From NCBI RefSeq assembly GCF_006345805.1, contig NC_043002.1, positions 82,274,001 to 82,338,000 on the forward strand: 64,000 nucleotides of DNA, in the 5' to 3' direction. A program made the translations under genes and the position numbers. The notes under the pieces were generated by a model. It did not search any database and was not told the origin of the DNA. It saw nothing but the letters and a program-made list of their open reading frames with translations. The first letter of the stretch is position 1. Every line of letters begins with the position of its first letter. The DNA is from Octopus sinensis. Lineage: Eukaryota. This document shows, in pieces, positions 1,463 to 57,335 of the stretch.

Positions 1463-1613
1463 TATATATATATATTAAATCCTAAGTTCTTTTTTAAACA
1501 TACATACTCTTTATCTCTCTCTCTATGTCTCTCATTTACTCTTTTCACACCTCTCGCTGTTCTCTCTTTCTTGTCTGCATGCTTTTCCTTATTCTGACTC
1601 ATTCTGATTCCAG

Positions 1614-1686
1614 AATGCTCAAACCCAAAGAAATGCAGAGCTAGATTTGGTCTTGACCAACAGAATCAGTGGTGCAAACCATGCAG
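1614..1686 (+). CDS. pan: TCF/LEF (pangolin) internal exon, first part of C-clamp ([25 protein letters not shown])
   Basis: Acceptor ttctgattccag at 1613 and donor CAG|GTAGGG at 1686/1687. The translation contains the TCF-diagnostic CRARF motif. Length is 73 nt, phase 1 in and phase 2 out. It is absent from the ORF track. Confidence 0.96.
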
Positions 1687-4600
1687 GTAGGGAATATTAA
1701 AAAAAAAAAAGAAAAAATGTCTAAATAAATATATATATATAAATATATATGTATATTTGCATACATGTATGTTAATATATATATAAATATACATATATAT
1801 ATATATATTGTGTGTGTGTGTGTGCGCCTTGTTTCTTTTTTTTTTTTATCTTTTTGTTTTTCTCTTTTGTTTCTTAGCCTGCTAGTGGCTAATGCAGAAA
1901 AGTTTGTAATTTCTGTCATAGCCCCGTAAGCTGGGTACTATATGTTAATATATGGTACTTAAAGCAAGTTCAACATCGTATTTTAAAAGTGATTATATAA
2001 TTTATTTAATGTACAAATAAGGAAAAAAAAAAAAAAAGACAGCATGATTATTTCTCTCTCACTTTCTCTGTCTTTTAGTCCCCCCCCCACCTTTCTTGTA
2101 CTAACATAATTGTTATAGTATTCATAAGCAGTTCCCTCCCCTACCTCTTTCTTTGCTGAGACTATTAATAGCAGTAGTTACATACATACATACTTACGTG
2201 TATATATGTATATATTATGGTGATTACTGTTAATTCTTATACTTTTCCTTTTCTTTCTTTTTGTACATTATTGAGATATTTTAAGATAATCAAAAATTTC
2301 CTTATTTGAATTTTAAAAAAAAAAACGATATATTTCTTTATATATATATATATGTATCCACATATATATCTCCGCATATCTATTGGCCACAGAAAAGAGA
2401 TCCTGTTTTACAAATTAAATGGATAAATTATTCCAGTATTGCGATTTGAAGTAGGTTTTCATGACATGTTTGTCTGCTTCTGTTTATTTCATTGTCTTAC
2501 CAAGTCGTTCAACTTTTCTGCAATGGCCATCTTGTCTCGTTTCAGATCAATGCATGAAAAGTGTGATCAAACTGCTGATTTAGAAACGAAAATCTCCACG
2601 GAGGTATAACATTAAGGTATCCTCGTTGACCTCTCCGCAGCATGCTCCTCGGCCAATGTAATGCTTAAATCTTCTACATCCTCGAAAAGTCATACATTAA
2701 GGTGTCAGCTTTGCATGTTACGATATCTCATAGGGGTCTGGGGATATAAAGCTGGTATACCCACCGATATTTTTCCACCCTGTCTTTTTTTACAACCCCA
2801 CCCCCCCAAAACTCCTTGTCCCCCCACTTTCAATTTTTCTGCCACTTCCCGTGAAACCCCCCATCCAAATGTGGTCATGCTTGTTACGTTGATTTGGTTG
2901 GTTGTCCTTCTGCTGCCTGCCAGGGCACCTTGCTTTGTTGTGTTGTATCTTCGAACTGCTTGTCGTTGTAGCCAATCAAAATGCTTGTTTCAATGTTCCC
3001 AAGCATGAAACTCTTTGGCCTGCTGCCTTCGTGGTTTTTATAGGTGTATGTCTTTATGCGCAAGCCAATGGTATCATACCTAACTGTCTGTAACCTGTGT
3101 TTATTTTTTTGGTTTGTTTGTACAAAATTATATCTTTTATTGTTTTTTGTCTTTTTTTGTATTGTTCTACCCTTACCCCACCTTTTTTTTAAATACATTT
3201 CCTATTTTTCCATATTTCCCACCCCATTCTTCTTATAACATCAATATCTTAATATTTAAACAATCTTTATTGATTCTATTCCATTTGCTGTCTACTTCTT
3301 GGAATTTTGGAATCTGTTAGGGCATTTATTTTATGTTTTGTTACAATTTTTAAAAAAAGAAACATTTTTTTTGTCATGGTTTTGCTGTTGCAAGTAAAAT
3401 GAATAATTCCCTGTGATTCATCTCTAAAGGCTGGTAACAAGATAACTTTCGTTGTTGAGTTGAACACTCCTTGTAGCTTGCTGCCCGTCCATACTTATGC
3501 ATTCTTGTATATTCACACACACACACAATTACAGCTCCTTTACATAACATACATTGTTATTGATATATTTCTCCTTTTTTAAGATTTTAAACACTAAACC
3601 CCAAGCAAGATATCACCAAACGTGGCTGTTATAATATCTTGCAAGTTCTAATCATTATACCGCCTCTTCCATTACTACTACTATTAGTGCCTTCTTTTTA
3701 CTATATTGATATTAGTATTTATAGTTCCTGAAGTTTTCATTCATTCTTAAGACATTTGTAGAAATCATTCACTGTTTCTGTTTTAATGTGGGAGTGACAT
3801 ACTTCTAGCAATCAAATGATACAGAACCAAGGAGAGACAATTCAAAATTTTGTCTAAGTCGATATGAGACATTATACTGAAAGTCTGTTGTAGTTTATTG
3901 TCGTTATTATTATTATTATCATCATCATCGTTATCAAAACCGTTTTTTTTTTTTTTTGAACAAACCATTGATTTCTAATTAATATTCATTTGGAAGTAGG
4001 AAGGAAAAGTAGCAAGGATGGGATGGGTGGATAAAAAAAAAAATATTGAAGTCTGCCTTGTCTAACAAAGCTGACACGTTAATTCTGTTGCTCCAGAAAT
4101 GTGTCTCAGGTCTGACAAGAGACAAGTATGCCTCACTGTCCAATATTTCACTCATCCTTTTCCTACCAACTACCCTAGCAGAAAAGCTGTGCCTGTCTCA
4201 TTCAGTCATTCTATCAATCCATCCACTGGATATATCCATATATATTTATTTTTCTCTCATTGTTTCATTTCACAATTATGCTTCACCGGTCCTCCTTCTT
4301 TTCTTCTTCCTCCTCCTCCTCTTCTTGCGTTTTCAGTTTTAAAAGAAAGAATATAACAAAAAATACAAAACAAAGAGACGGGGGAAAAAACACGGTTTTT
4401 CTCAGTTGTGTGCGTTTCCTTCATTCCCACTTTTTCTTTCTTCCCCTACCCCCACATCTTATTTGGTTTTGTTCCTTTCTGTGCATGACAAATAAAAAAT
4501 GAATAAATAAACCCTTAAAAAAAAATAAAATTTGACAAACTAATCTTCTTCTCATCTCCCATCTCCTCACTTCCTTTCTTACTGTGATGTTTTGATCATT

Positions 4601-5404
4601 TTTAAGCACCATATTTTTTTTTTTCCATTTTTTTTCTGGATGGTTTACATTATGATTGGTTCATTTATTTATTTATTTATTTATTTCTAGTCACCTTTAG
4701 TACGTATGTATGTCCATATGTATGTACGTACATAACATTTTTGTATGTATGTACATATATATATATCTGTGTATGTATGTCTCTGTGAGTGAGCGCCTAT
4801 CTGTCTGTGTGTGCGGCATGCACATTTTTAATAGAAAGAGGCTTGGATATTTTTAACAGCTAACATCGTTGTCCTGTCTTTGTTTATATCCTTATTATTA
4901 TTATTAATATCATCACTATCGTCATCATCATTCCCTTACTCCCCATTTCCTTCTTTTCCTCTAAATATTTTTGGTTCTAAGACTATTCTGCCTGTTTCTC
5001 ATTGATATTTTCTCTTCTTTTTTTTTTTTTTTTTCCAAAGTTTCCTCACCATTTCCATCCTATGGTAATGCCAAGAAATTCTTCAGCTCTGTTTTTGATG
5101 ACCACATCCCCAATTCTCAAATGGAAACAAATGACAAATAAAAATCTTTTAAATAACCAAAAAAAAGACAAAACAAAAAAAAAACATATTCCTTTCTACC
5201 CACCCTTTCTACCACTTACAACCCTGCTTTTTCTCTCTTTCCTCTTTCTATTCCCCTATATCTTATATATATATATATATATATGTATGTATATGTGTGT
5301 GTATGTATACACACCCATTTTACACACATACATATCAGTTAAATACCTCTTACATAAAATATCCCTGATTTTAAAAAATTTTAAACATTTAACTTCACTA
5401 CTTC

Positions 5405-5440
<36 letters not shown>

Positions 5441-8400
5441 ATTTTCCACTTAACTGAGGCATTTCTACCATGGCCAGCTGTTGTGTGAGAGTGAAAACAG
5501 GATTTCACCCTTTTAGGGGACAAGTTTATACTTACTAGCTAATTTTGAACCATCTCAGAGAAATGTCTAATTTTGACCTTTGACTGAGAGTTGTTTGTAA
5601 AATAAGCAAACTAGAAATAAACTTTTATATCAGACTAGTCTATGGTCACACTTCTCTAGCAGTGTTCATCTATGTAAAAGCTTATGTAAGCACCTTGTTT
5701 CACTCATTTTCACACATAGCGAAATTTTCTGTTAACCTTTTTTTTTTTTTTTTGATATTATTGTTATTATTATTTTTTTTTTATTGTTGTTGTTGTTGTT
5801 GTTATTAATCAAAATTTTCTACATGTTATCTTACCGAATGCCTCCACATTTAAACCAAATAGGCAAGTGTGAGTGTTGTTAATAAACAGACACACTCTTC
5901 AATTTCAATACGTAGAACCCTGATAGAATTTGACGAGTTTGAGCACATGTACAACATACTCTACAATATCATATATATATATATACACACACACACGCAC
6001 CATTATAAATAGAATACACATTACAGTTATAATTATTATTCTCTGCACTCCTCTAAACAGACAAATATTTATTACAGTCTATATGAACACCACTAGAAAA
6101 CAACATAGGTCCATTATGAAGATAGACAAACTGATGTAATGATATTAATGATAACCATAACATTAATAGTGTCATACAAAATAATTTACATGATCAATAA
6201 ATAAGTTACAAAATAGGAAATTAAGTATAATTATTTTCAAAAAAATTACGCATTTGTAGATTTGTTTTATAATGAATGATTTTGATGTTATTTTCACTTT
6301 GATTTTTAGTCTTGTTTTTGGTAAATTTTATCTTCAGCTTTTGACACAGAGAAAAACTACAACTTATGTGTGTGTGTGTATATATATATAGCAGTATTTT
6401 GTTCAAGGAAGCTCTCTTTAAAGACATATTATGCTAAAAGACACAGTATACTTCAAAACTAGGTAAAATGAAATCGCCAGAGAAGTGAACACACACAACA
6501 AATATCAATGTTTCACTGTTTTTGCTGCTCATCAGTATCATGTACACATCCCATTTCTGAAGCAAAATTGAAATAACAAACCAGAAGCATATGCAAGTAG
6601 TGTAAAAATTTCTTTGCCAATATGCAGTAAGTCTCCACAAGGAAAACAAAATTCAAATTTTGCTTCAAAGAAGCAGCTCAATGAAGGATGCCAGTTTTAT
6701 GACAGTAACACACATACACACACATATATGTACAATGGGCTTCTTTCAGTTTCTATCTACTAAAATACATTCACAAGACTTTAGTCAGTCCAGGGCTATA
6801 GTAGAAGACATTTGCCCAAGATGTCATGCAGTGGGGCTGAACCAAAAGCTGTGTATTTGCGAAGCAAACTTCTTGACACATAATATTTGAAAAACATTAT
6901 AATGAATAAATAGTTAAGAATTGAGAAATTTTGCCGGATGTTATATGAAAATAGAATTTCGAAGTAAACATATTTAATATTGTTGACTAGAAAGCAAAAC
7001 AAGAGTGCGTCACTTTAATTCAAGGGGCATAACTCTTTCTTCTAATGGTGTTTTCTGTAAATATTTTTCAAATTTAATTTTGTGTGTGTTTGTGTTTGTA
7101 CTGCATATTATGTCTAATACTAATAATATTTGCTGAAACAAGAACAGAAATTCTGACAGTGAGTTTGTTAGCTCTGATAATAGTCGTTTCTAAGTTTGGC
7201 AGGAAGCAAAATGGTCTTACATCTTTTCAGAATTACCTCCCATGTTTTCTAGCTGCCATTATGGATTTTACGAATATTTTCCCTACCATTGGATATGTAT
7301 TAGAGCATTCGTTGTAGGGGGAAGGGGCACACACACATACACACACAAACTAAAGTTGTTTTTTTCCATTTTTTTTTCTTTTTCAGATTTATTTGCGAAT
7401 CTTTTTTTAATGACTATTGTTATTATTATCATTACGTTGACACATCAATAAACAATTGAGGCAGTTTTTTTTTCATACGTAGAAACGTTTATTTGGATTT
7501 TTTGCCATTAAAAAAATACTTTTCATTGATGTTGACGTCATCATCATCAACATTAACCAATATAAAATAAATATTAACAAATGCTTATTTAGAAAGTGGG
7601 GTCTTGTTTTTCTTTTTCTTTTTTGTAAATATATTTTATTTTATGGCCATAGTTTAACTTTTTAGTTATTATATTCCTAATTAAATGCACAGCCTATTTG
7701 TTTTAATTTATTTGTAAAGATTTTGGGAGATTTAGTAAAATACCAAATTTTTTCTTGAATAAGCTGTTGTTTGGAACTCACACACATAATATCATTCAGT
7801 CATACACACACACACAGAGGAAATATTTCTTTAATTAACTAGTTGCTATCATTATGGTGACTATCGGATCATAGTACATAGCTACATTTTAAACTATTTT
7901 CTATACACACACAAACACACAGGTAAACACATAGGTGCAAAACAAGGTAGTAAAAATAGTACTAGAATACCAAAGGTAGAGCAATATACTTTTATTAAAG
8001 CTGAAAAAATCACAACTCTGAGTAATGATTTGTGAAATTTTTTTCAGTTTTAATAAAATAGTGTGTGTGTGTGTATATATATATATAATATATATATATA
8101 TATATACGCACATACATACCACATACATTAATATTTCACTATCAACATTATTCTAACAGCTGCCATTGTGCAAACGTAAGGATTTATCAAACTAAAATCA
8201 AGACTTGCATTTCATTTCCTGTTGGAACTATTCCATTCAAAAGAACGCAAATACCTTGGAACTGGAACATTTCATTTTACTTTTCTTGTCAATGTGAAAC
8301 TTTTACTTGATGATGTTATTTTAATGTTTACAGAGTTCAGTGTCAATTAAATCAATTGTGCAAGTCTATATCTGATAATGTTTCTTGATATCTTTATCAG

Positions 8401-8473
8401 TCTGACACACACACACACACACACACACATATTATATATATGTATATTTACATTATTTCTCTCTTCATTACAG
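1687..8473 (+). other. pan: GT-AG intron of TCF/pangolin (6787 nt) splitting the C-clamp
   Basis: GT at 1687 and pyrimidine tract ctctcttcattacag ending at 8473. The join AG|A restores Arg in CKPCR-RKKKC. Confidence 0.9.
6700..6890 (-). mobile_element. Family A SINE, 5' half
   Basis: Reverse complement of the family A head and core. Confidence 0.75.
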
Positions 8474-8768
8474 ACGAAAGAAGAAGTGTATTAGATTCCT
8501 GACTGGTGAAGATGGAACAGCCAGCAACACTGATGGGGAGGATGGCAATGATGATGTTATGAGTGATGGCATCACCACAATGACAACAACTGCAGATTCT
8601 ATGAATGAAAGTGACTGTAATTTAGAGAGCCCTAACCTGTCACCTCACAGCGAACACATAAAAGAACAGCAGCAACAGAAATTCATTCAAAATATTAAGG
8701 TTGAATCCACAGACTCTGCTTATTCTCCACCACCAGTGCCTCGTTCCTGCTCTTCACCAAACACCTAG
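8474..8768 (+). CDS. pan: TCF/LEF (pangolin) terminal coding exon: RKKKCIRFLTGEDG...SCSSPNT*
   Basis: Extending track ORF 8559..8768 upstream in frame to the acceptor gives RKKKCIRF, the end of the TCF C-clamp. Stop TAG at 8766-8768. Confidence 0.94.
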
Positions 8769-10870
8769 GGAAAGCCACATTTCCAATTCCAAAAACCATC
8801 GATTACAGGTAGCATAATATTTCACTATTACCCCCTGCCATGCTGCTGGCAGGGGAATATGAAATAGATAAGGACATTAAAAGGATTTACCAAACATAAC
8901 CAGACAAAGAAAATAGAGACGGCATGTATTATATATACACATATATATATATAACTATGTATGTATATGTGTGTGTGTGTGTGGTACATGTCTGTGTAAA
9001 TGGATGCATGCACTAAGGTACATATATGCAGAGTCACATTATGCATACATGTCTTCTTGGGCTATGTTTGTGTGTTATGTATGGGTCTATGTCTGTGTGT
9101 GTATGCATAAGAATATATGTGAAGCCATACATATTTGCACATACAATTATGTACATGCTTGTTTCAAGTCTGGTGGAGTGCATGTGTGCATAGTTGAAGG
9201 AAGGGTGTGTGTTTGCATGTAGATTGTATGTTTTACATACACACACATATATATACACACATACATATTTATACACATACACACACACACATATATACAC
9301 ACGTGTGTGTATGTATGTATGTGTGTGTATGTATGTATGTGTGATTGTATCTTAAAAAAAAATTACCAAAGCCTAAATCTGAAGCTTAAACAATTTAGAT
9401 TGAAGAATGAATAGTTGAGCCACTCTGGGAGGTGTTGGGCTCCACTGAGGTCTGTTTAAGCTAGGCTTATGCTTGGGGAGGGTAGGGAGGAATCTCAGCA
9501 CTGCTCAGGGTCAGCAGTCAAAGAATTTGGTTCGATATTTGTCCAACAAAACAAGATTTTGAAGAAAGCAAAAAAAAAAAAGCAAAAACGAAACAACAAA
9601 CAAGCGAAAAATACTAACAGAACTGGGGGTAAAAATACAAGACAAAAAGGAATTTAAAACTAAATAAATCGCAGGGTCGCCCAAAATTTTGGAAAAAATA
9701 CAAAAAAAATAGAAAAAATGAAAGAACGAGCAAAAGCCTAAAACAGAAACTTTACTGAAATCTATTGCCATGCAACTCCGTCGTACAGCTCACAGCTTCT
9801 TTCACTGATGGCGCCTCTGGTCCGTATAATTAAAACAAAAATAAACAAAAAACAATAATTAGTGAAAAAAAAAGTGAGGAAGAAAAAGAAAAGAGAGAAA
9901 AAAAGAACAAGCTTTGATATTTTTGTATAAACATTGCCATCAATATGTGACGATTTCATTCACCATGTGTGTATTCTTTTTGTTTTTCTCTTATCTTTTT
10001 CCTCTATACTTTTAAAAAGGTGAAAGAAGATTTTAAAAAATATAAAAAAATAGGAGCTTATGTTTAACAAAAATATATAAAAAAACAAAAATGACAATAC
10101 TGAAAGAAGAAAATCGAGTCCATCCTTGTTTTTTTTTATTATTTTTTTTTTTTCTTTCTTTCCATTTAAGAAAGACAGTTAAACGAGTAAAAGAGAAAAA
10201 AAAAACAAAAAAACATTGACAATACTTTTTTCCTTGGTTGTATTATTTTAAGAGTAAACGACAAAATGAACAACAGTAAAAAAAAACAAAAACATCCAAT
10301 TATGAGAAACCTGGGGAAAAAAATAACAAAAAAAAAGCAACTTTTTTTTAAAAGTGATAAAAATTCTGATCATTGTAAATATTGCATGAGATAGTGATGT
10401 CACTATTTTGTGATGTTTTTAGTACTCACTAGGAGAGGTTGTTGTTGCCCTTGTTCTGAACTGCATCATCTGCCTCATATCTCCATGGTTACCAGCTTCA
10501 TTCTTCTCATCACTGGACCTAGGGTTCCCCATTCCCACCCCCTGTCACCACTGCTGTGACTCTCCTTCCACCCCCACCCTTCCATTTACTCTTTTCTCTT
10601 TTCAGTCATCACCCTTGTTCGCTCACTCACAACCACCGCCATGCCCTTTTCTCCAAAAAAAAAAAACGGTAAAAGAGGGGACCCCTACCTCTTTCCTGGC
10701 CCTGTAGTCTCTCCACCCTAACCTTCCCACATCCACACCTCCTCTCCACTCAGAACCGAACCTTCAAGGACAGTAAGATGACAAAAATTACTGCTACAAC
10801 AACGCTCTGTCCACAATGTTTTTTTTTTTCAATGGAAAAACAAATAAAATTAAATAATAATAATAATAGT
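8769..10870 (+). other. Presumptive TCF 3'UTR
   Basis: Follows the stop codon and is A/U-rich. Several AATAAA/ATTAAA hexamers are present (e.g. 9663-9668, 10843-10854). The true end cannot be fixed from sequence alone. Confidence 0.4.
8930..9345. repeat. Compound (TA)/(TG)/(CA) microsatellite tract
   Basis: Direct inspection. Confidence 0.85.
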
Positions 10871-11029: not shown

Positions 11030-11062
<33 letters not shown>

Positions 11063-11629
11063 CACATATATATATATATATATATAATATGCAACAAAAT
11101 TTAGGAATACTTGCTGAGTTTGGTGGCTGTATATTTTTTTTTTTACCTCCCCTTCTTCTCTCCCAAATCATGTTGGTAGTCATATCACATTTATGTTCAC
11201 AGATAAAACGTTCTCAAGATAGAGTGGGAATATTGTCACTAAAGAACAGGTTGCATGGGGCAGGGTGCTATTTATTTATGTAATTCACCAACTCACCCAC
11301 CCACCCACGATGTCATTGTCTCCCTCTCTTCCCTCTAAATGCTTAGCAGTTCTGTTTAAGTTTCCATGTACAAACTACTTTGCATTATATCTGGCTAGTT
11401 TTTGTTTTTTAGGTTTTTGCCATAAGCCACTTCCCATTCACTTTTTACATGCATATATATATATATATACATGCTATGTATGTGCGTTTGTATGTGTATA
11501 TATATATATATATATATGTATATATACCACACAAACACACATGTATGCATGGTAGCTTAAGAAACATTAAACATTTGTCTATGTTACTGTATAAGTAGTG
11601 ACATTTGTGTATACTGCAGTATATATATA

Positions 11630-11675
<46 letters not shown>

Positions 11676-12234
11676 CACATATATATATATATATATATAA
11701 TATGCAACAAAATTTAGGAATACTTGCTGAGTTTGGTGGCTGTATATTTTTTTTTTTACCTCCCCTTCTTCTCTCCCAAATCATGTTGGTAGTCATATCA
11801 CATTTATGTTCACAGATAAAACGTTCTCAAGATAGAGTGGGAATATTGTCACTAAAGAACAGGTTGCATGGGGCAGGGTGCTATTTATTTATGTAATTCA
11901 CCAACTCACCCACCCACCCACGATGTCATTGTCTCCCTCTCTTCCCTCTAAATGCTTAGCAGTTCTGTTTAAGTTTCCATGTACAAACTACTTTGCATTA
12001 TATCTGGCTAGTTTTTGTTTTTTAGGTTTTTGCCATAAGCCACTTCCCATTCACTTTTTACATGCATATATATATATATATACATGCTATGTATGTGCGT
12101 TTGTATGTGTATATATATATATGTATATATACCACACAAACACACATGTATGCATGGTAGCTTAAGAAACATTAAACATTTGTCTATGTTACTGTATAAG
12201 TAGTGACATTTGTGTATACTGCAGTATATATATA

Positions 12235-28229: not shown

Positions 28230-31110
28230 TTATAACACCTCGTTATAAACAATGTTCCTTGTTTTTCCTTGTGGAGCATATACAAAAAGGTTTCTTTTGT
28301 TTCCTACTCTTGAGCAGCCAACATACAGTTGTCCATGCGAGAAGCAGGGTTCTTCCAAGAGAAGACCAGCTACAGAGAGGGTTTGACCCTGAGATTTGTT
28401 AATGGACATGGCAGAGCTGACACGAAGGGGGAATTGCAGTCTTCTGAATGTAAATGGAATTTCTGCTCCTGATGGAGTAAGAGGAATTCTTGGAATAAAG
28501 ACGTCATCACCTTTTCCACATCCAGAAAGAATGATCGCCTCGATAACGTGTGACATCATTTTCTTTATCACCAGTCATGTTCCATTGCAAAGTCTTGGTG
28601 GTTCCAGATTGCGGAGTAGCATTACAGGAGTTCCAACTTTAAGTGCTAATATGTGTGGAGTGTGGAGGTAGCCCAGGAGACTCCAGTGAATTGAGAAATT
28701 CAGGAGGATAGTTCACAACTTCATTTATATCTGAAATTGTATCAACAGACTTGTAAGTGTGTATAGTGCCGGGAAGAGAATGCATTAGCTGTTGATTAAT
28801 TTTGTTAACAGCGACGTTTTTTGGAGCTAATATTGCTCTTTCACACAGCCAATTGTGATTTTGGTAGTTTTGTGTGAAGTTGGGAAAGACTTTGTTTTTG
28901 AGGTCATCTACAGAATTAACAACAGAGGAAAATGATCACACTTCCATTTGTCCTGCAGCATCGAGAGGCATCCTGCCGTCACCAAGTGTCAAAATGTCCT
29001 GTGCAAACTTTGTGGACATTTTGTCGCCGTGTAGCGGTGAGACTGAGGATTGTAACATGATGCCACAGGGTAGAGGACTTTAGGCATGCTTGGACTTCAT
29101 CTGCTCTAGTGCCTTTCAGAATGACAGGAAGAGTTTGCCTGAAATCACCTGACAACAGAAGCGTTACACCTCCCATTGGAGCCTGACAGTCTCGGATATC
29201 TTTCAGGGCTCTATCTAATGCTTCCAAAGCTCCCTTGTGAGCCATAGTGCACTCATCCCAGACAATTAGATGACACATTTTAAGAACTTATCCCTGGTCT
29301 GAGCTTTTGTTGATGTTGCATGAAGGCATTTTGGATGCTGCTAAATTGAGAGGGAGTTGAGTGTGCTGTCCTGCTACCGGGTAACAAAGTAGCTGCAATG
29401 CTAGAGGAGGCTACAGCTACTGCAATGTCCTGATGCTGCCTAACTTCTGCAAGAAGAAGCTTTGTAATAAATGTTTTTCCTGTCCCTCCAGGAGCATCGA
29501 GGAAGAAGATTCATCCCTCGCGTTGGCGTACACTGTTAAGAATAGTTCTGTAGGCCTGCAGCTGGTCTGGAAGTAATTTAGGCTCATTTTCAACAATGTA
29601 CTTTGAAAGCGCTTGAGTGTCATAGGTTGTTTCACGAATGACAGCAGTGGGAAGGCTATTTGACCCTGACCAGAACGCTTGTGGCAGGCCATACGTCAAC
29701 AATTCATTTCCACCCAGTTTAGCAATTCTGTCTTCAATGTCAATGAGTGTTTTGTTATAGATTCATTGCTGATACCCTCCATGTCAGGATAGAGCAGTTG
29801 AGCTTGGCGCTGAAAGTCTTCAGCCAGGTTGTCTCTATATTTGAGCCATAGAGTGGCTGGATCACACAGTTCGCATGCCTGTAGTAATACTGCAAATAGT
29901 GCCCTGAGACTTTTAGGTGATTGTGATAAAGCAGCCTCTCCTAAAGTTGCATCCCATTGTGCACCATCTTCTAACAGGCCTTGTCGATAGCAGGCTTCTC
30001 TGTATGTTGTGCAGACATGTCCATGAACGGTTTTTAGGGCCTGGAAAGACGTTGGCCCTCTGACCTCATGCAGTAGTAGACGAAGGTAGAAGCACTCTTG
30101 TTGAGTGGGATGCACTATGTATACTTGCCCAAGGCAAGTGTGAAACTTAATGCCAGGGTATCTATGAACATTTTGACCTGCTTTCCGTGGGGCCCATTTT
30201 TTTTCATTCCAAGTGTAGTACGATCGAATCTGTGGATACAGCAAGGTTTGAGCAAATGGATCCACTTGACAAAGCTTGAAGAATGCAGTGAGTGTGCTAT
30301 CCCTTGGTTCCTCTGCCAACAGAGAAGCATTAGCATCAGTGAAGTACACTCTTTGACCATTTCCAGGTGCACTGCAAGCTGTTGAATGGCAGGGTGTCGT
30401 TGGTGAATTGGAAAGCCAAAGATGCGCCAGAAAGCCTCATTGCTACTTATGTACCGTCCCACCTGATAATGCGTCACCTCATCCTGGCAGTATTCTTGTT
30501 GAAGTCCAAACATTGCAGTGTCAGAACCCTTGTTTACATATTTGCAAACGTACTTGATGGATTTAACGGAGTTGCAAAACTCAACATTGATGTGGGCATT
30601 GAAAGTCTTTGACAGGAGTGGGCAGTATGGAACAATCCATATATTATCAATATCGTGCTGTCTGATAGTTGCTGTGAAACCTCCGTCTTCTGGTTTTCTG
30701 CGTCTGTATGATGGATACCCATCAGCACCTGTCTGAGTTTCTTGTAGGAACCTCTTTGGAAATCTTTTTGAACATATGCTGTCCTTCAAGCATGGTGAGT
30801 TTATGTTGAATCCACGCCCACATGGACCATGTACCATGTTTGCTTTAACTATTTCGTATAGTTCTTTGTCTAAAGCTGGACCAGGAAGCTCTGCAGAGAT
30901 TATGTTGTCAATGTCATTGGAATTGATCTTCGCTGAGAGCCAAAGCAGGATATGAGCATGTGGAAGGCCCCTTTTTTGCCACTCGATTGTGTACATGTCA
31001 CATTGTATGGCCCAAAGACTTGCCCTTTTTGTATGAGCTCCATGAGAGAGATTAACTTCAGATGGAAAACTCAGGCGTTGAGATTCCGGTTCGAATGTAA
31101 GGCAGGTTTG
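28230..31110 (-). pseudogene. Frameshifted Helitron Rep/PIF1 helicase
   Basis: HUH motif EWQKRGLPHAHILLW (HAH at 30952-30960), YVCKYVNKG, Walker A DAPGGTGKT (GGTGKT at 29472-29489), Walker B IVWDE, GDFRQTLPV and INKSQGQT...HGQLYVGCSRV. Motifs are spread over several frames. Confidence 0.93.
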
Positions 31111-31139
31111 AAAGTGTTCCCAACAGTTATTAGTTGTAG

Positions 31140-31345
31140 TAGTAAAGTGTTTATGCCGAATATGTACGTATGCATGTATATATATGTATGTATGCCTGTA
31201 TATATGTACAAACTCCACTGAGAAGGCTTTTGTTGGTCTGAGGCTACAGCAGAAGACACATGCCAAGTTACCACACAGTGGGACTGAACCCAGGACCATG
31301 TGTTTGGAACATAGTTTGTTACCACACAGCCACACCTGCCCCTAT
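31140..31345 (-). mobile_element. Family A SINE 5' half nested in the Helitron
   Basis: Family A head and core in reverse, interrupting the Helitron upstream of Rep homology. Confidence 0.8.
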
Positions 31346-52745: not shown

Positions 52746-54250
52746 AGCATAATAACCTGAGAATGAAGTTAATTATTTAACCAACTTCGAAGTAAAAACC
52801 GGTAACTTCTATGGTTTACCCAAGATTCACAAATCAAAAGACATCCAAGACAACATAAAAAGAAACAATTCAACATATGAAACTATGCCCAATCATTGCA
52901 GGACCAGCATCCAGTACACAATACTTAAGCAACTTAATATAGTTCTAAAACCTTTATGCAAAATGATAACAAGCTTTGTTCAGGATGATATGGATTTCTT
53001 AAACTACATACCTAAAAGTGTCCACCAGGAGACAATTCTTGTTACTTTTGATGTAGCTAGTCTATACACCAATATCCCACATGACCTAGGAATTGAAGCC
53101 ATAAATTTCTGGTTAACAAAACTACCGAATCATATCATGGAAAGATTATCAAAAAACTTTGTTTTAGAAGGACTAAAATTAATACTGGAAAATTATCACT
53201 TCTTTGACAACCTCTACTTATAAATAAAAAGAACGGCAATGGGGACAAAAACAGCCCCCACCTATGCAACATTTGTAATGGGCTTCTTAGAGGTCAAGCT
53301 CTATTCTCAACTAATAGAAACATTTAACAAACAATTCACCATTTATATATATATATATAAATGGAAGTGATATTTGGATGACTGCTTTATATTCTGGACC
53401 AAAAGCCAAGAAGACTTAGGAATCTTTCACTCATTTTAAAATAATTTACAAATTTCAATAACATTCACCATGGAACAACACACAAATGAATTACCTTTTT
53501 CAGACATACTGCTAATTAAAGAAAATAACACCATAAAAACAGATCACTTCTACAAACCTACATTTAAACTTTCATCCCTCCCATCCCTTACATACCAAGA
53601 GAAACATACTCTTTAATATGGCAAAACAAATTTGCACTATAGTAATAGATGCAGGATTAAGGGATAAAAGATTACAGGAATTAAAAATATTTCTAAAAGA
53701 AAAAAATATCCCATTAGTTTATTTGACACAGCAATCACCAAAGTAAAAAACACCCGAACTACAGACCTCAGAGCAAAACAAACACACAGATATAAAAATG
53801 AACTCATAAGCATTCCTTTTGTCATCACCCACAACCCAAGAAATCACATCATCAATACTGCAAAAAGATACCTCCCAATTCTTCAACAATCATCAAGAAT
53901 AAACAAAAATAATTTATAGCAGACATCAAGCACCCAATCTAAAAAAGCTCTTAACCCAAGCAAGATTTACAACTAGAGAAACAACAAAGAGAGTTCAGAA
54001 ATGTGGTGACCCTCGCTGTGGAACGTGTGATTACATTGAAGAAGGAGAAAATTACTTTCAAAGACAACAACACCTTTAAAATAAATGCAAATATGGATTA
54101 CAAATCTAGAAACCTAAATTACTGTGCCACATGTCCCGAATGCAAAGAATACTAAATTCCCTTTCTTCAAACTATGGACAGAAAATGAACACTTTTGTAA
54201 GACAAAGGAAGAATATTTTATTTGGAAATACCAACTGAAATTGAACAAAA
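52746..54250 (+). mobile_element. Penelope-like element (Neptune-type) RT plus truncated GIY-YIG pseudogene
   Basis: FYGLPKIHK, RPIIAG, TFDVASLYTNIP, TAMGTKTAPTYA, YLDD (53371-53382), KCGDPRCGTCDYI and NLNYCATCPECKEY. Multiple frameshifts. Confidence 0.9.
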
Positions 54251-56575: not shown

Positions 56576-56699
56576 TATCGTATGCTCATGTGGCTGCACC
56601 AGTTTTATCCTGCTTTAACCTCCTACACTTTAGATTTACTACTACCTGAACTTACCAGCATTCTACATGGATTACTACTGAATATACATATGAATACCA

Positions 56700-57335
56700 A
56701 GAGTGTTTATTTCCCCTGTGCATCTGCCACACACGAAAGCTATCTTCCCAGTTAATCTTCCTTTGATGTTGCTGCACCTCTTATGCATCCACAGCTTACA
56801 CTGAGTACATCTTATAGAGTTTCTACCTACACCTTTTCTACAGATTGAGTAGAGCCATCTACCTGAAGGGATGTGTGATGTATTCGCCTTTCTTCTTACT
56901 AAGACTTTGGTTTTTGCGACATTGACTCTAAGGCCCTTCGATTCTAAACCTTGCTTACTCACCTGAAATTTCTTCTCTAGTTCTTGTAGTGATTCTGCTA
57001 TGAGAGCCAAGTCATCAACATAGAGGAGCTCCCAGGGGCAACCTGTCTTGAATTCCTCTGTTATTGCCTAGAGGACTATGATGAATAAGAGGGGGCTGAG
57101 GGTTGATCCTTGGTGGACCCTTACTTCTACCCGGAATTCTTCACTATACTCATTGCTAATCCTAACCTTACTAACAGCATCTCTGTAAAGCCCTTATTAA
57201 CCATTCGTCAATCCCTAGTTTCTGCATGGCCCACCAGATGAGGGATCAGGGGACCCTGTCAAAGGCTTTCTCCAAGTCCACAAAAGCCAAGAGTAGGGGT
57301 TTATCTTTGGTTAGGAATTTCTCCTGCAGTTGCCA
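56700..57335 (-). pseudogene. Second RTE RT fragment
   Basis: FVDLEKAFDRVP, VHQGSTLSPLLF, LLYVDDLAL and GLRVNVAKTKV, plus the same Zn finger. Confidence 0.9.

Follow-up and report, generated by a model that had tools for sequence, protein, structure and literature searches.

We analyzed a 64-kilobase (kb) stretch of the Octopus sinensis genome (contig NC_043002.1, positions 82,274,001 to 82,338,000; the window, in whose own numbering coordinates are given) that, as judged by sequence comparison, is the 3′ end of the single octopus TCF/pangolin gene, named 'transcription factor 7-like 2' in RefSeq. The product obtained by joining position 1686 to position 8474, the gene model put forward in the original prediction, is 100% identical to the C-terminus of O. 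sinensis TCF7L2 isoform X5 (XP_036359963.1), which bears that model out; the tail is likewise identical in O. vulgaris models and differs by one residue in an O. bimaculoides-like sequence. The O. sinensis gene spans ~385 kb with its HMG-box exons upstream of the window, and tblastn searches with four TCF proteins and the octopus isoform tails located no HMG exons in the window. Membership in the TCF/LEF family is evident from the O. sinensis isoforms bearing the window's C-termini, which carry HMG boxes (PF00505/PF09011); a typical TCF N-terminus is seen in a Doryteuthis protein (P0302), the octopus RefSeq models that we retrieved starting downstream of that part. The octopus isoforms were reached with a full-length abalone TCF as query and include 11 O. 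sinensis RefSeq isoforms, which are members of two octopus clusters.

The exon encoding the CRARF motif of the C-clamp, here termed exon A, occupies 1614..1686 of the forward strand, is 73 nucleotides (nt) long and has AG/GT borders; its translation was checked. A pyrimidine-rich tract and ccAG lie just upstream of it and GTAGGG just downstream. Its entry phase is 1 and its exit phase 2, with AG passed to the next codon (a layout of 2 + 23 codons + 2), such that its omission moves the frame of the last exon by one base. The coding part of the last exon (8474..8768, forward strand) is preceded by ttacAG and was translated in all three frames, each of which is used by RefSeq isoforms. Joining exon A to the last exon creates the sequence AG|A CGA AAG AAG AAG TGT, which reads RRKKKC and completes a four-cysteine clamp (...CKPCRRKKKC), so that KKCRARF/Y...WCxPC followed by RKKKC, with the four conserved cysteines, is encoded across this junction. 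The original description of a 73-nt exon, of a clamp split at CKPCR|RKKKC, and of a full four-cysteine clamp followed by a long tail was accurate to the base. The 121-residue product of exon A and the last exon matches C-clamp proteins (precomputed PF27556) from many animals with E down to 1e-15, and the coding of a C-clamp is therefore not due to chance. A scan of this product with a local copy of Pfam yielded no match to the C-clamp model, and a protein search with the 121-residue tail returned short proteins only and none from cephalopods, the word-based search appearing to favour short targets. No second CRARF/CRALF exon was found by tblastn with four clamp/TCF proteins in the 6.8-kb intron that separates exon A from the last exon or in the rest of the window.

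According to its gene models, the octopus gene has three tails resembling the E, S and M tails of vertebrate TCF7L2, and the first 21-29 nt of the last exon are read in all three frames to produce them. Direct joining of exon A to the last exon gives the E-like frame RKKKCIRFLTGEDG... (RRKKKCIRFL...), in which the clamp is followed by a 98-residue tail that ends at a TAG at 8766-8768 (RefSeq X1-X8). Insertion of a further exon, exon B, between the two gives the S-like ending SMHEKCDQTADLETKISTE-TKEEVY, with its TAG at 8492-8494 (RefSeq X9). Skipping of exon A joins a phase-1 upstream exon straight to 8474 and gives the M-like ending xERRSVLDS, with a TGA at 8500-8502 (RefSeq X10 and X11). The RefSeq isoforms also fix the phase of the upstream exon, which reads ...RPSII-E-CSNPKK (G|AA) when exon A is included vs ...RPSII-D-ERRSVLDS (G|AC) when it is not. 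All these octopus isoforms are already present in RefSeq as computed models, and no new sequence is reported here.

Several lines of transcript and model data bear on the skip form. The two O. sinensis models X10 (XP_036359968.1) and X11 (XP_036359969.1) end in ...YQWERTRPSIIDERRSVLDS / ...RPSIIDERRSVLDS, which is exactly the predicted skip product with D, encoded by G|AC, as the residue x left undefined in the original prediction, whose skip frame and stop codon were also confirmed by translation. Two proteins of the octopus clusters predicted from sequencing-run assemblies (P0303 and P0304) end in ...AKSRLPWYFNDVNTGERKSALDS. In cuttlefish-like data, the skip junction lies in the contigs of these proteins, uninterrupted sequences resembling complementary DNA from three runs (L004, SRR23936182; L005, SRR25158138; L008, SRR25158147), which pass from the upstream exon straight to the last exon (...GTTAACACGG|GCGAAAGAAAAAGTGCATTAGATTCCTGA) and encode GERKSALDS before the stop; both sides of this junction are identical to Sepia pharaonis genome exons and meet at its annotated GT/AG sites. 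The cuttlefish skip variant omits an in-frame 72-nt cassette besides the 73-nt exon. One of the three contigs (L008) extends through the last exon and beyond the full-clamp stop into the 3′ untranslated region (UTR), and the other two end 29 nt past the junction, as would be expected of a k-mer graph where several isoforms merge. Outside molluscs, a 3.7-kb annelid-like transcript (L006, DRR659537) contains the junction ...GATCTAG|ACGAAAGAAGAAGTGCATCCGG... and ends in DERRSASGFLKMEA before its stop, beyond which the full-clamp-frame tail persists as an open frame that goes unused. Among TCFs, those of annelids resemble its protein most (60-64% to Lamellibrachia and Platynereis). A protein search for RNA-derived fragments with a 67-residue peptide across the octopus skip junction gave no matches. 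A frame-switching cassette of the TCF7L2 type, with skip transcripts existing in cephalopods, is supported by these sequences, and the suggestion that the switch is active in a cephalopod is in line with the X10 and X11 models and with the skip contigs from three runs identical to Sepia.

Exon B, which the original prediction missed, is a better-conserved alternative exon that brings the third frame of the last exon into use. It occupies 2546..2603 of the forward strand, is 58 nt long and is bordered by tttcAG and GAG|GTATAA. When placed after exon A, it contributes one base that finishes an arginine codon and 19 further codons, (R)SMHEKCDQTADLETKISTE, and it sets the last exon in frame 0 (ACG AAA GAA GAA GTG TAT TAG), producing a clamp that keeps three cysteines and lacks RKKKC. 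Isoform X9 of O. sinensis, O. bimaculoides models and several O. vulgaris models carry this S-like tail and end in ...WCKPCRSMHEKCDQTADLETKISTETKEEVY, and the extra sequence maps to 2546-2603; the exon is also 58 nt long in the cuttlefish genome. Because an in-frame stop sits at its donor (GTA TAA, 2604..2609, forward strand), leaving the donor unused would end the protein in ...STEV, and exon B could double as a terminal exon. The STEV end is found in some O. vulgaris models, the cuttlefish genome has GTG TAA at the equivalent place, and Haliotis X4 and Mytilus forms end in STDV and PEVQ, respectively. The exon B donor (CGGAG|GU) can pair over 5 base pairs with a conserved downstream CUCUCCG in both octopus and cuttlefish (window 2597-2640), a predicted pairing that could mask the splice site and whose folding statistics are not significant.

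Tails of the exon B type follow the pattern S[LM]HE..[CS][DE]Q..A[DE][LIV][EK] and are present in Haliotis, Aplysia, Elysia, Babylonia, Batillaria, Candidula, oysters, mussels, clams and scallops; cassettes in a comparable position are found in Lingula (a brachiopod), Lineus (a nemertean) and one beetle. They usually finish with the last exon in frame 0 (KEEVY, EEEMY or KEEVHSL before the stop), and a few stop just past exon B (STDV, PEVQ). A single oyster cluster of such forms holds 45 member sequences, many of them from RNA assemblies. A histidine, and often a cysteine, is retained near the position of the fourth clamp cysteine; the tails of Aplysia, Elysia, Candidula and Mytilus lack that cysteine, however, which makes a rebuilt zinc site doubtful. 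Five scallop RefSeq isoforms (P0348, P0349, P0353, P0359 and P0360) end in ...ISTEVSSGEKRNVLDTCSKMESNT / ...EKRNVLDTCSKMESNT. Judging from their sequence, the ...ISTEVSSGEKRNVLDTCSKMESNT isoforms appear to use a longer exon B that leads into the same M-like frame as the octopus skip form, and it is through this longer exon that the frame would be translated in bivalves by another route.

Comparison of the octopus window with the Sepia pharaonis locus (L007) by blastn revealed conserved blocks around both alternative exons. Exon A, which is 73 nt long in both species, aligns together with 38 nt of upstream intron and its donor site (1576..1693; 86% over 118 nt, L007 62537-62653), and exon B aligns together with flanking intron, 44 nt upstream and 73 nt downstream (2502..2676; 90% over 176 nt), all on the forward strand. 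The exon B block is better conserved than the last-exon coding sequence (8456-8768, forward strand), for which identity is 77% over 316 nt. Alternative exons under regulation are often marked in this way, by flanking intron that is better conserved than coding sequence, and the pattern lends regulation here indirect support. An intronic element downstream of exon A (1867..1923, forward strand; 86% over 57 nt) begins 14 nt after exon A in cuttlefish, 8 nt past the conserved donor block, and lies 180 nt after it in octopus because an AT/GT microsatellite intervenes; this microsatellite (1725-1808) and the GT and T runs that follow it occupy the space between exon A and the conserved element. A hairpin, GGCUA..CAGAAA...UUUCUG..UAGCC, is predicted in both species (1887-1923 and L007 62680-62716) with weak z-scores of -1.6 and -2.5, and the element may be a candidate for splicing control. 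The intron between exon B and the last exon contains a second non-coding element (2869..3084, forward strand; 89% over 222 nt) with stops in all six frames, which may serve as an enhancer or a splicing element or else belong to an alternative 3′ UTR of exon B-terminated transcripts. Folding of the conserved blocks around exon B returned nothing significant, and an Rfam scan of the whole window matched no family.

Further blocks of this intron align to the cuttlefish intron at 5469-5502 (97% over 34 nt) and 5644-5789 (72% over 148 nt), and a block downstream of the stop codon (10364..10504, forward strand; 78% over 141 nt) aligns just past the cuttlefish last coding exon and is probably part of the 3′ UTR. 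The intron from exon A to the last exon measures 6.8 kb in octopus vs 23.7 kb in cuttlefish, where the span from the HMG exon to the last exon is 76 kb. Additional microsatellites (AT, CA/GT and related) are located at 8404-8430, 9058-9343, 11030-11090 and 11620-11703.

Outside the window, octopus isoforms (P0286, P0298 and others) contain two versions of the exon encoding the HMG C-terminus and nuclear-localisation tail, one reading WHALDRAEQAKYYEMARKEKELHMQ...SHTKKKKRKRETT and the other WHALTKAEQAKYYDMACKEKDLHMQ...GRYAKKKIKRGKQQSEDT with a weakened basic stretch; from their sequences, the two versions look mutually exclusive. Two extra small cephalopod exons, encoding AK[AS]RLPWYFNDV[TN]T and DSITAEGSSG.DSY.WERTRPSII, lie between the nuclear-localisation tail and the clamp (L007 44560-44632 and 31934-31976; also in octopus isoforms). 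The second of these is a 72-nt in-frame cassette, which is alternatively included and absent from X6-X8. Elsewhere in the window, broken open reading frames (ORFs) on the minus strand (28230-31335) encode a Helitron helicase-like N-terminal domain (PF14214, E 3.5e-6, just under the curated cut-off) and a PIF1-like helicase C-terminus recognised by eye, and probably represent a decayed Helitron transposon. A weak reverse-transcriptase fragment (52885-53223, forward strand; PF00078, E 0.009) and a small ORF with a PHD-type zinc finger (56675-57010, minus strand; PF00628, E 9e-6) are probably retroelement remnants.

Taken together, we consider it very probable that the last exon of this Wnt-pathway transcription factor gene is begun in three frames by way of three splice patterns, two of which remove or shorten the C-clamp, a second DNA-binding domain, as happens in human TCF7L2. 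Joining exon A to the last exon would provide a complete clamp (the CRARF part plus RKKKC) and an acidic 98-residue tail; adding exon B would leave the CRARF part and its three cysteines and replace RKKKC with the SMHEKCDQTADLETKISTE-TKEEVY ending; and skipping exon A would yield a protein that has no C-clamp and ends in DERRSVLDS. Exons A and B are each a multiple of three plus one nucleotide in length (73 and 58 nt) and lie just before the last exon, so that every early stop falls in the last exon. Under the rule of nonsense-mediated decay, messenger RNAs with early stops in the last exon should be stable and translated. Work on the TCFs of flies and vertebrates leads us to expect that binding to GC-rich helper sites via the C-clamp is confined to the E-like form, and that the S- and M-like forms would bind by the HMG box alone and activate different Wnt targets.

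Against this three-frame switch, it may be argued that exon A is effectively constitutive and that skip transcripts are low-level splicing errors encoding a truncated protein without a role, errors that would persist because an early stop in the last exon evades decay. Several observations weigh on that side. Exon A is skipped in only 2 of the 11 O. sinensis RefSeq isoforms, and in Octopus itself the skip form is known only from these computed models, X10 and X11. The skip tail is just 9 residues long and, since its sequence follows mechanically from the RKKKC codons, it carries no sign of selection. Among the members listed in our survey of isoforms by cluster (at most 15 per cluster, all computed models), no plain skip isoform occurs in oysters, mussels, clams, scallops, Lingula or Lineus, nor in beetles, shrimps, spiders or ticks. 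Moreover, the Logan assemblies from which the skip contigs derive keep rare k-mers, and minor products could be assembled in them. Yet the skip junction turns up in three independent runs and next to two different upstream variants. In the cuttlefish-like L008 and the annelid-like L006, the skip path is one unbroken contig that runs from coding sequence into the 3′ UTR, which suggests that it was a main form in those samples, and octopus and cuttlefish share conserved intron flanks around exon A. The equivalent M forms of vertebrates are, in addition, abundant and functionally distinct (PMC2847248, PMC12166992). Given this evidence, we deem splicing error an improbable explanation of the skip transcripts.

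A frame switch acting through exon A could nevertheless be secondary to exon B, whose inclusion, as a clamp variant or an alternative terminal exon, would then be the main regulated event. Exon B and its flanks form the most conserved stretch of the region (90% over 176 nt), the stop right after its donor is kept in octopus and cuttlefish, and tails of its type extend across cephalopods, gastropods and bivalves, with the similar cassettes of Lingula and Lineus and the 45-member oyster cluster in addition; the histidine and frequent cysteine near the fourth clamp position also fit a clamp variant, except that this cysteine is missing from the four molluscan genera named above. Skipping of exon A remains compatible with such a scheme, both events being present in RefSeq models of one gene, and we give the primacy of exon B slightly less than an even chance. 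The origin of the switch admits separate answers. On present evidence, the exon architecture appears ancestral to protostomes and deuterostomes, as its sequence in octopus, cuttlefish, a genomic contig (L001) and fish TCF7L2 is identically organised. Skipping may then have arisen independently in cephalopods, some annelids and vertebrates, repeated origin being easy because any skipping of a 73-nt exon yields a stable messenger RNA; the patchiness of skip forms among sampled protostomes, the listing of C-clamp-lacking isoforms as a potential vertebrate innovation (PMC9303524) and the different way in which Platynereis makes its clamp-less form, through an intronic stop after the HMG exon (PMC5996498), all point in that direction. 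Set against repeated origin are the shallow sampling behind this patchiness, the annelid-like skip transcript outside molluscs, and the scallop isoforms that translate the M-like frame in another way (...EKRNVLDTCSKMESNT), and we view the case for it as evenly balanced. That the whole three-way switch is homologous between molluscs and vertebrates and descends from their last common bilaterian ancestor seems doubtful to us. The original proposal of a switch ancestral to bilaterians stands as regards the exon architecture common to octopus and fish and is doubtful as regards the switch itself, for which no plain skip was seen among the listed isoforms of other protostomes; the expected orthologous exon in other molluscs was likewise recovered at 73 nt in cuttlefish, with no plain skip among the listed bivalve isoforms.

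In the prevailing account, invertebrates possess a single TCF of essentially one form, and C-clamp-lacking isoforms arise with vertebrates (PMC9303524). Octopus, cuttlefish and many other molluscs appear from these data to encode the same three tail classes by the same frame-shift logic, with the same exon length and phases as fish TCF7L2, which makes the choice between an ancient and a convergent origin testable with existing RNA sequencing data. Were the whole switch ancient, C-clamp-lacking forms and the vertebrate exon XIII would also be ancient, and their absence from the record in flies, nematodes, sea squirts and other invertebrate models would reflect loss or oversight. Developmental studies of Wnt signaling in cephalopods gain specific isoforms to tell apart. 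Our search of the literature on the C-clamp in molluscs or cephalopods found no paper describing these isoforms; the parallel with vertebrate TCF7L2 is apparently undescribed and bears on the published claim of vertebrate innovation.

The closest known system is vertebrate TCF7L2 (Weise et al. 2010, PMC2847248), which shares with the octopus gene a 73-nt CRARF exon with the same phases and the same intron positions around KKCRA...WCKPC|RRKKKC. In both, one 73-nt exon gives a full clamp and a long tail, its absence gives a short tail with a nearby stop in the last exon, an extra exon after the CRARF exon gives a clamp without the fourth cysteine, and more than one frame is used at the start of the last exon. 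The published rules for TCF7L2 are that one 73-nt exon leads to the E form, none to the M form with a proximal stop, and extra exons to S forms without the fourth cysteine (PMC12166992, PMC2847248); mouse products of reverse transcription PCR with and without the CRARF exon are 73 base pairs apart (PMC12166992). In the TCF7L2 locus of the fish Diretmus argenteus (L003), the CRALF exon is 73 nt long (2 + 23 codons + 2) with the phases of the octopus exon, the last exon starts at the same codon (AG|G AGA AAA AAA AAG TGC), and the skip frame reads GEKKSAFATSKVK / GEKKSAFATSKVKAAV... The likening of the octopus exon to the 73-nt C-clamp exons of TCF7L2 is thus sustained by both the fish exon and the 73-base-pair difference in mouse. 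The C-clamp exon of genomic contig L001 is also 73 nt long with identical codon positions, and that of an arthropod-like contig is ~70 nt long with the frame shifted likewise. The similarity between ERRS in octopus and GEKKS at the start of the vertebrate M tail, which had been offered in support, was rejected as independent evidence of homology, both being the conserved RKKKC codons read one base out of frame.

The two systems also differ. Vertebrate TCF7L2 has duplicate CRARF and CRALF exons, whereas the octopus window has one CRARF exon only; the skip tail has 9 residues in octopus vs ~25 in vertebrate TCF7L2; and PLSL-type CtBP motifs occur in the long tail of fish TCF7L2 and not in that of octopus. 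Common S forms in mouse include both 73-nt exons, whereas the octopus S-like form uses exon B, which resembles vertebrate exon XIII (S or F forms) in lying in the same intron and having the same effect. A tblastn search of the fish TCF7L2 intron with exon B peptides from six species gave no meaningful match, the test being powerless at such length, and enumeration of AG...GT-bounded candidate cassettes in that intron was uninformative. Isoform function has been tested in vertebrate TCF7L2 only, the mollusc isoforms being known here from sequence and models. The B, C, D and E isoforms of vertebrate TCF7 (TCF1) resemble the octopus forms in that the CRARF exon (exon XII) is alternative and its absence shifts the last exon and removes the clamp (PMC9303524); they differ in using two alternative acceptor sites at the last exon, nothing similar being seen at the octopus locus.

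Among lophotrochozoans, Platynereis dumerilii has, like octopus, a single TCF gene (Pdu-Tcf) that produces forms with and without the C-clamp and has two alternative exons for part of the HMG domain (PMC5996498). Its clamp-less form, however, results from a stop in the intron after the HMG exon, and its other variants result from alternative sites inside a single clamp exon, with no exon-skip frame switch described (PMC5996498). The usual description of invertebrate TCF/pangolin gives it the domain set and clamp (CRARF, RKKKC) of the octopus gene, in one gene in which the clamp is always present; reviews cited in PMC9303524 ascribe to invertebrates typically one TCF isoform. The deuterostome survey of that paper counts forms without the C-clamp, and the additional exon XIII, among potential innovations of vertebrates (PMC9303524), and a long-read study by the same group covers Ciona, lamprey and frog only (PMC12865960). 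In contrast to that account, the public annotation of octopus and other molluscs contains both kinds of variant, those lacking the clamp and those in which it is truncated.

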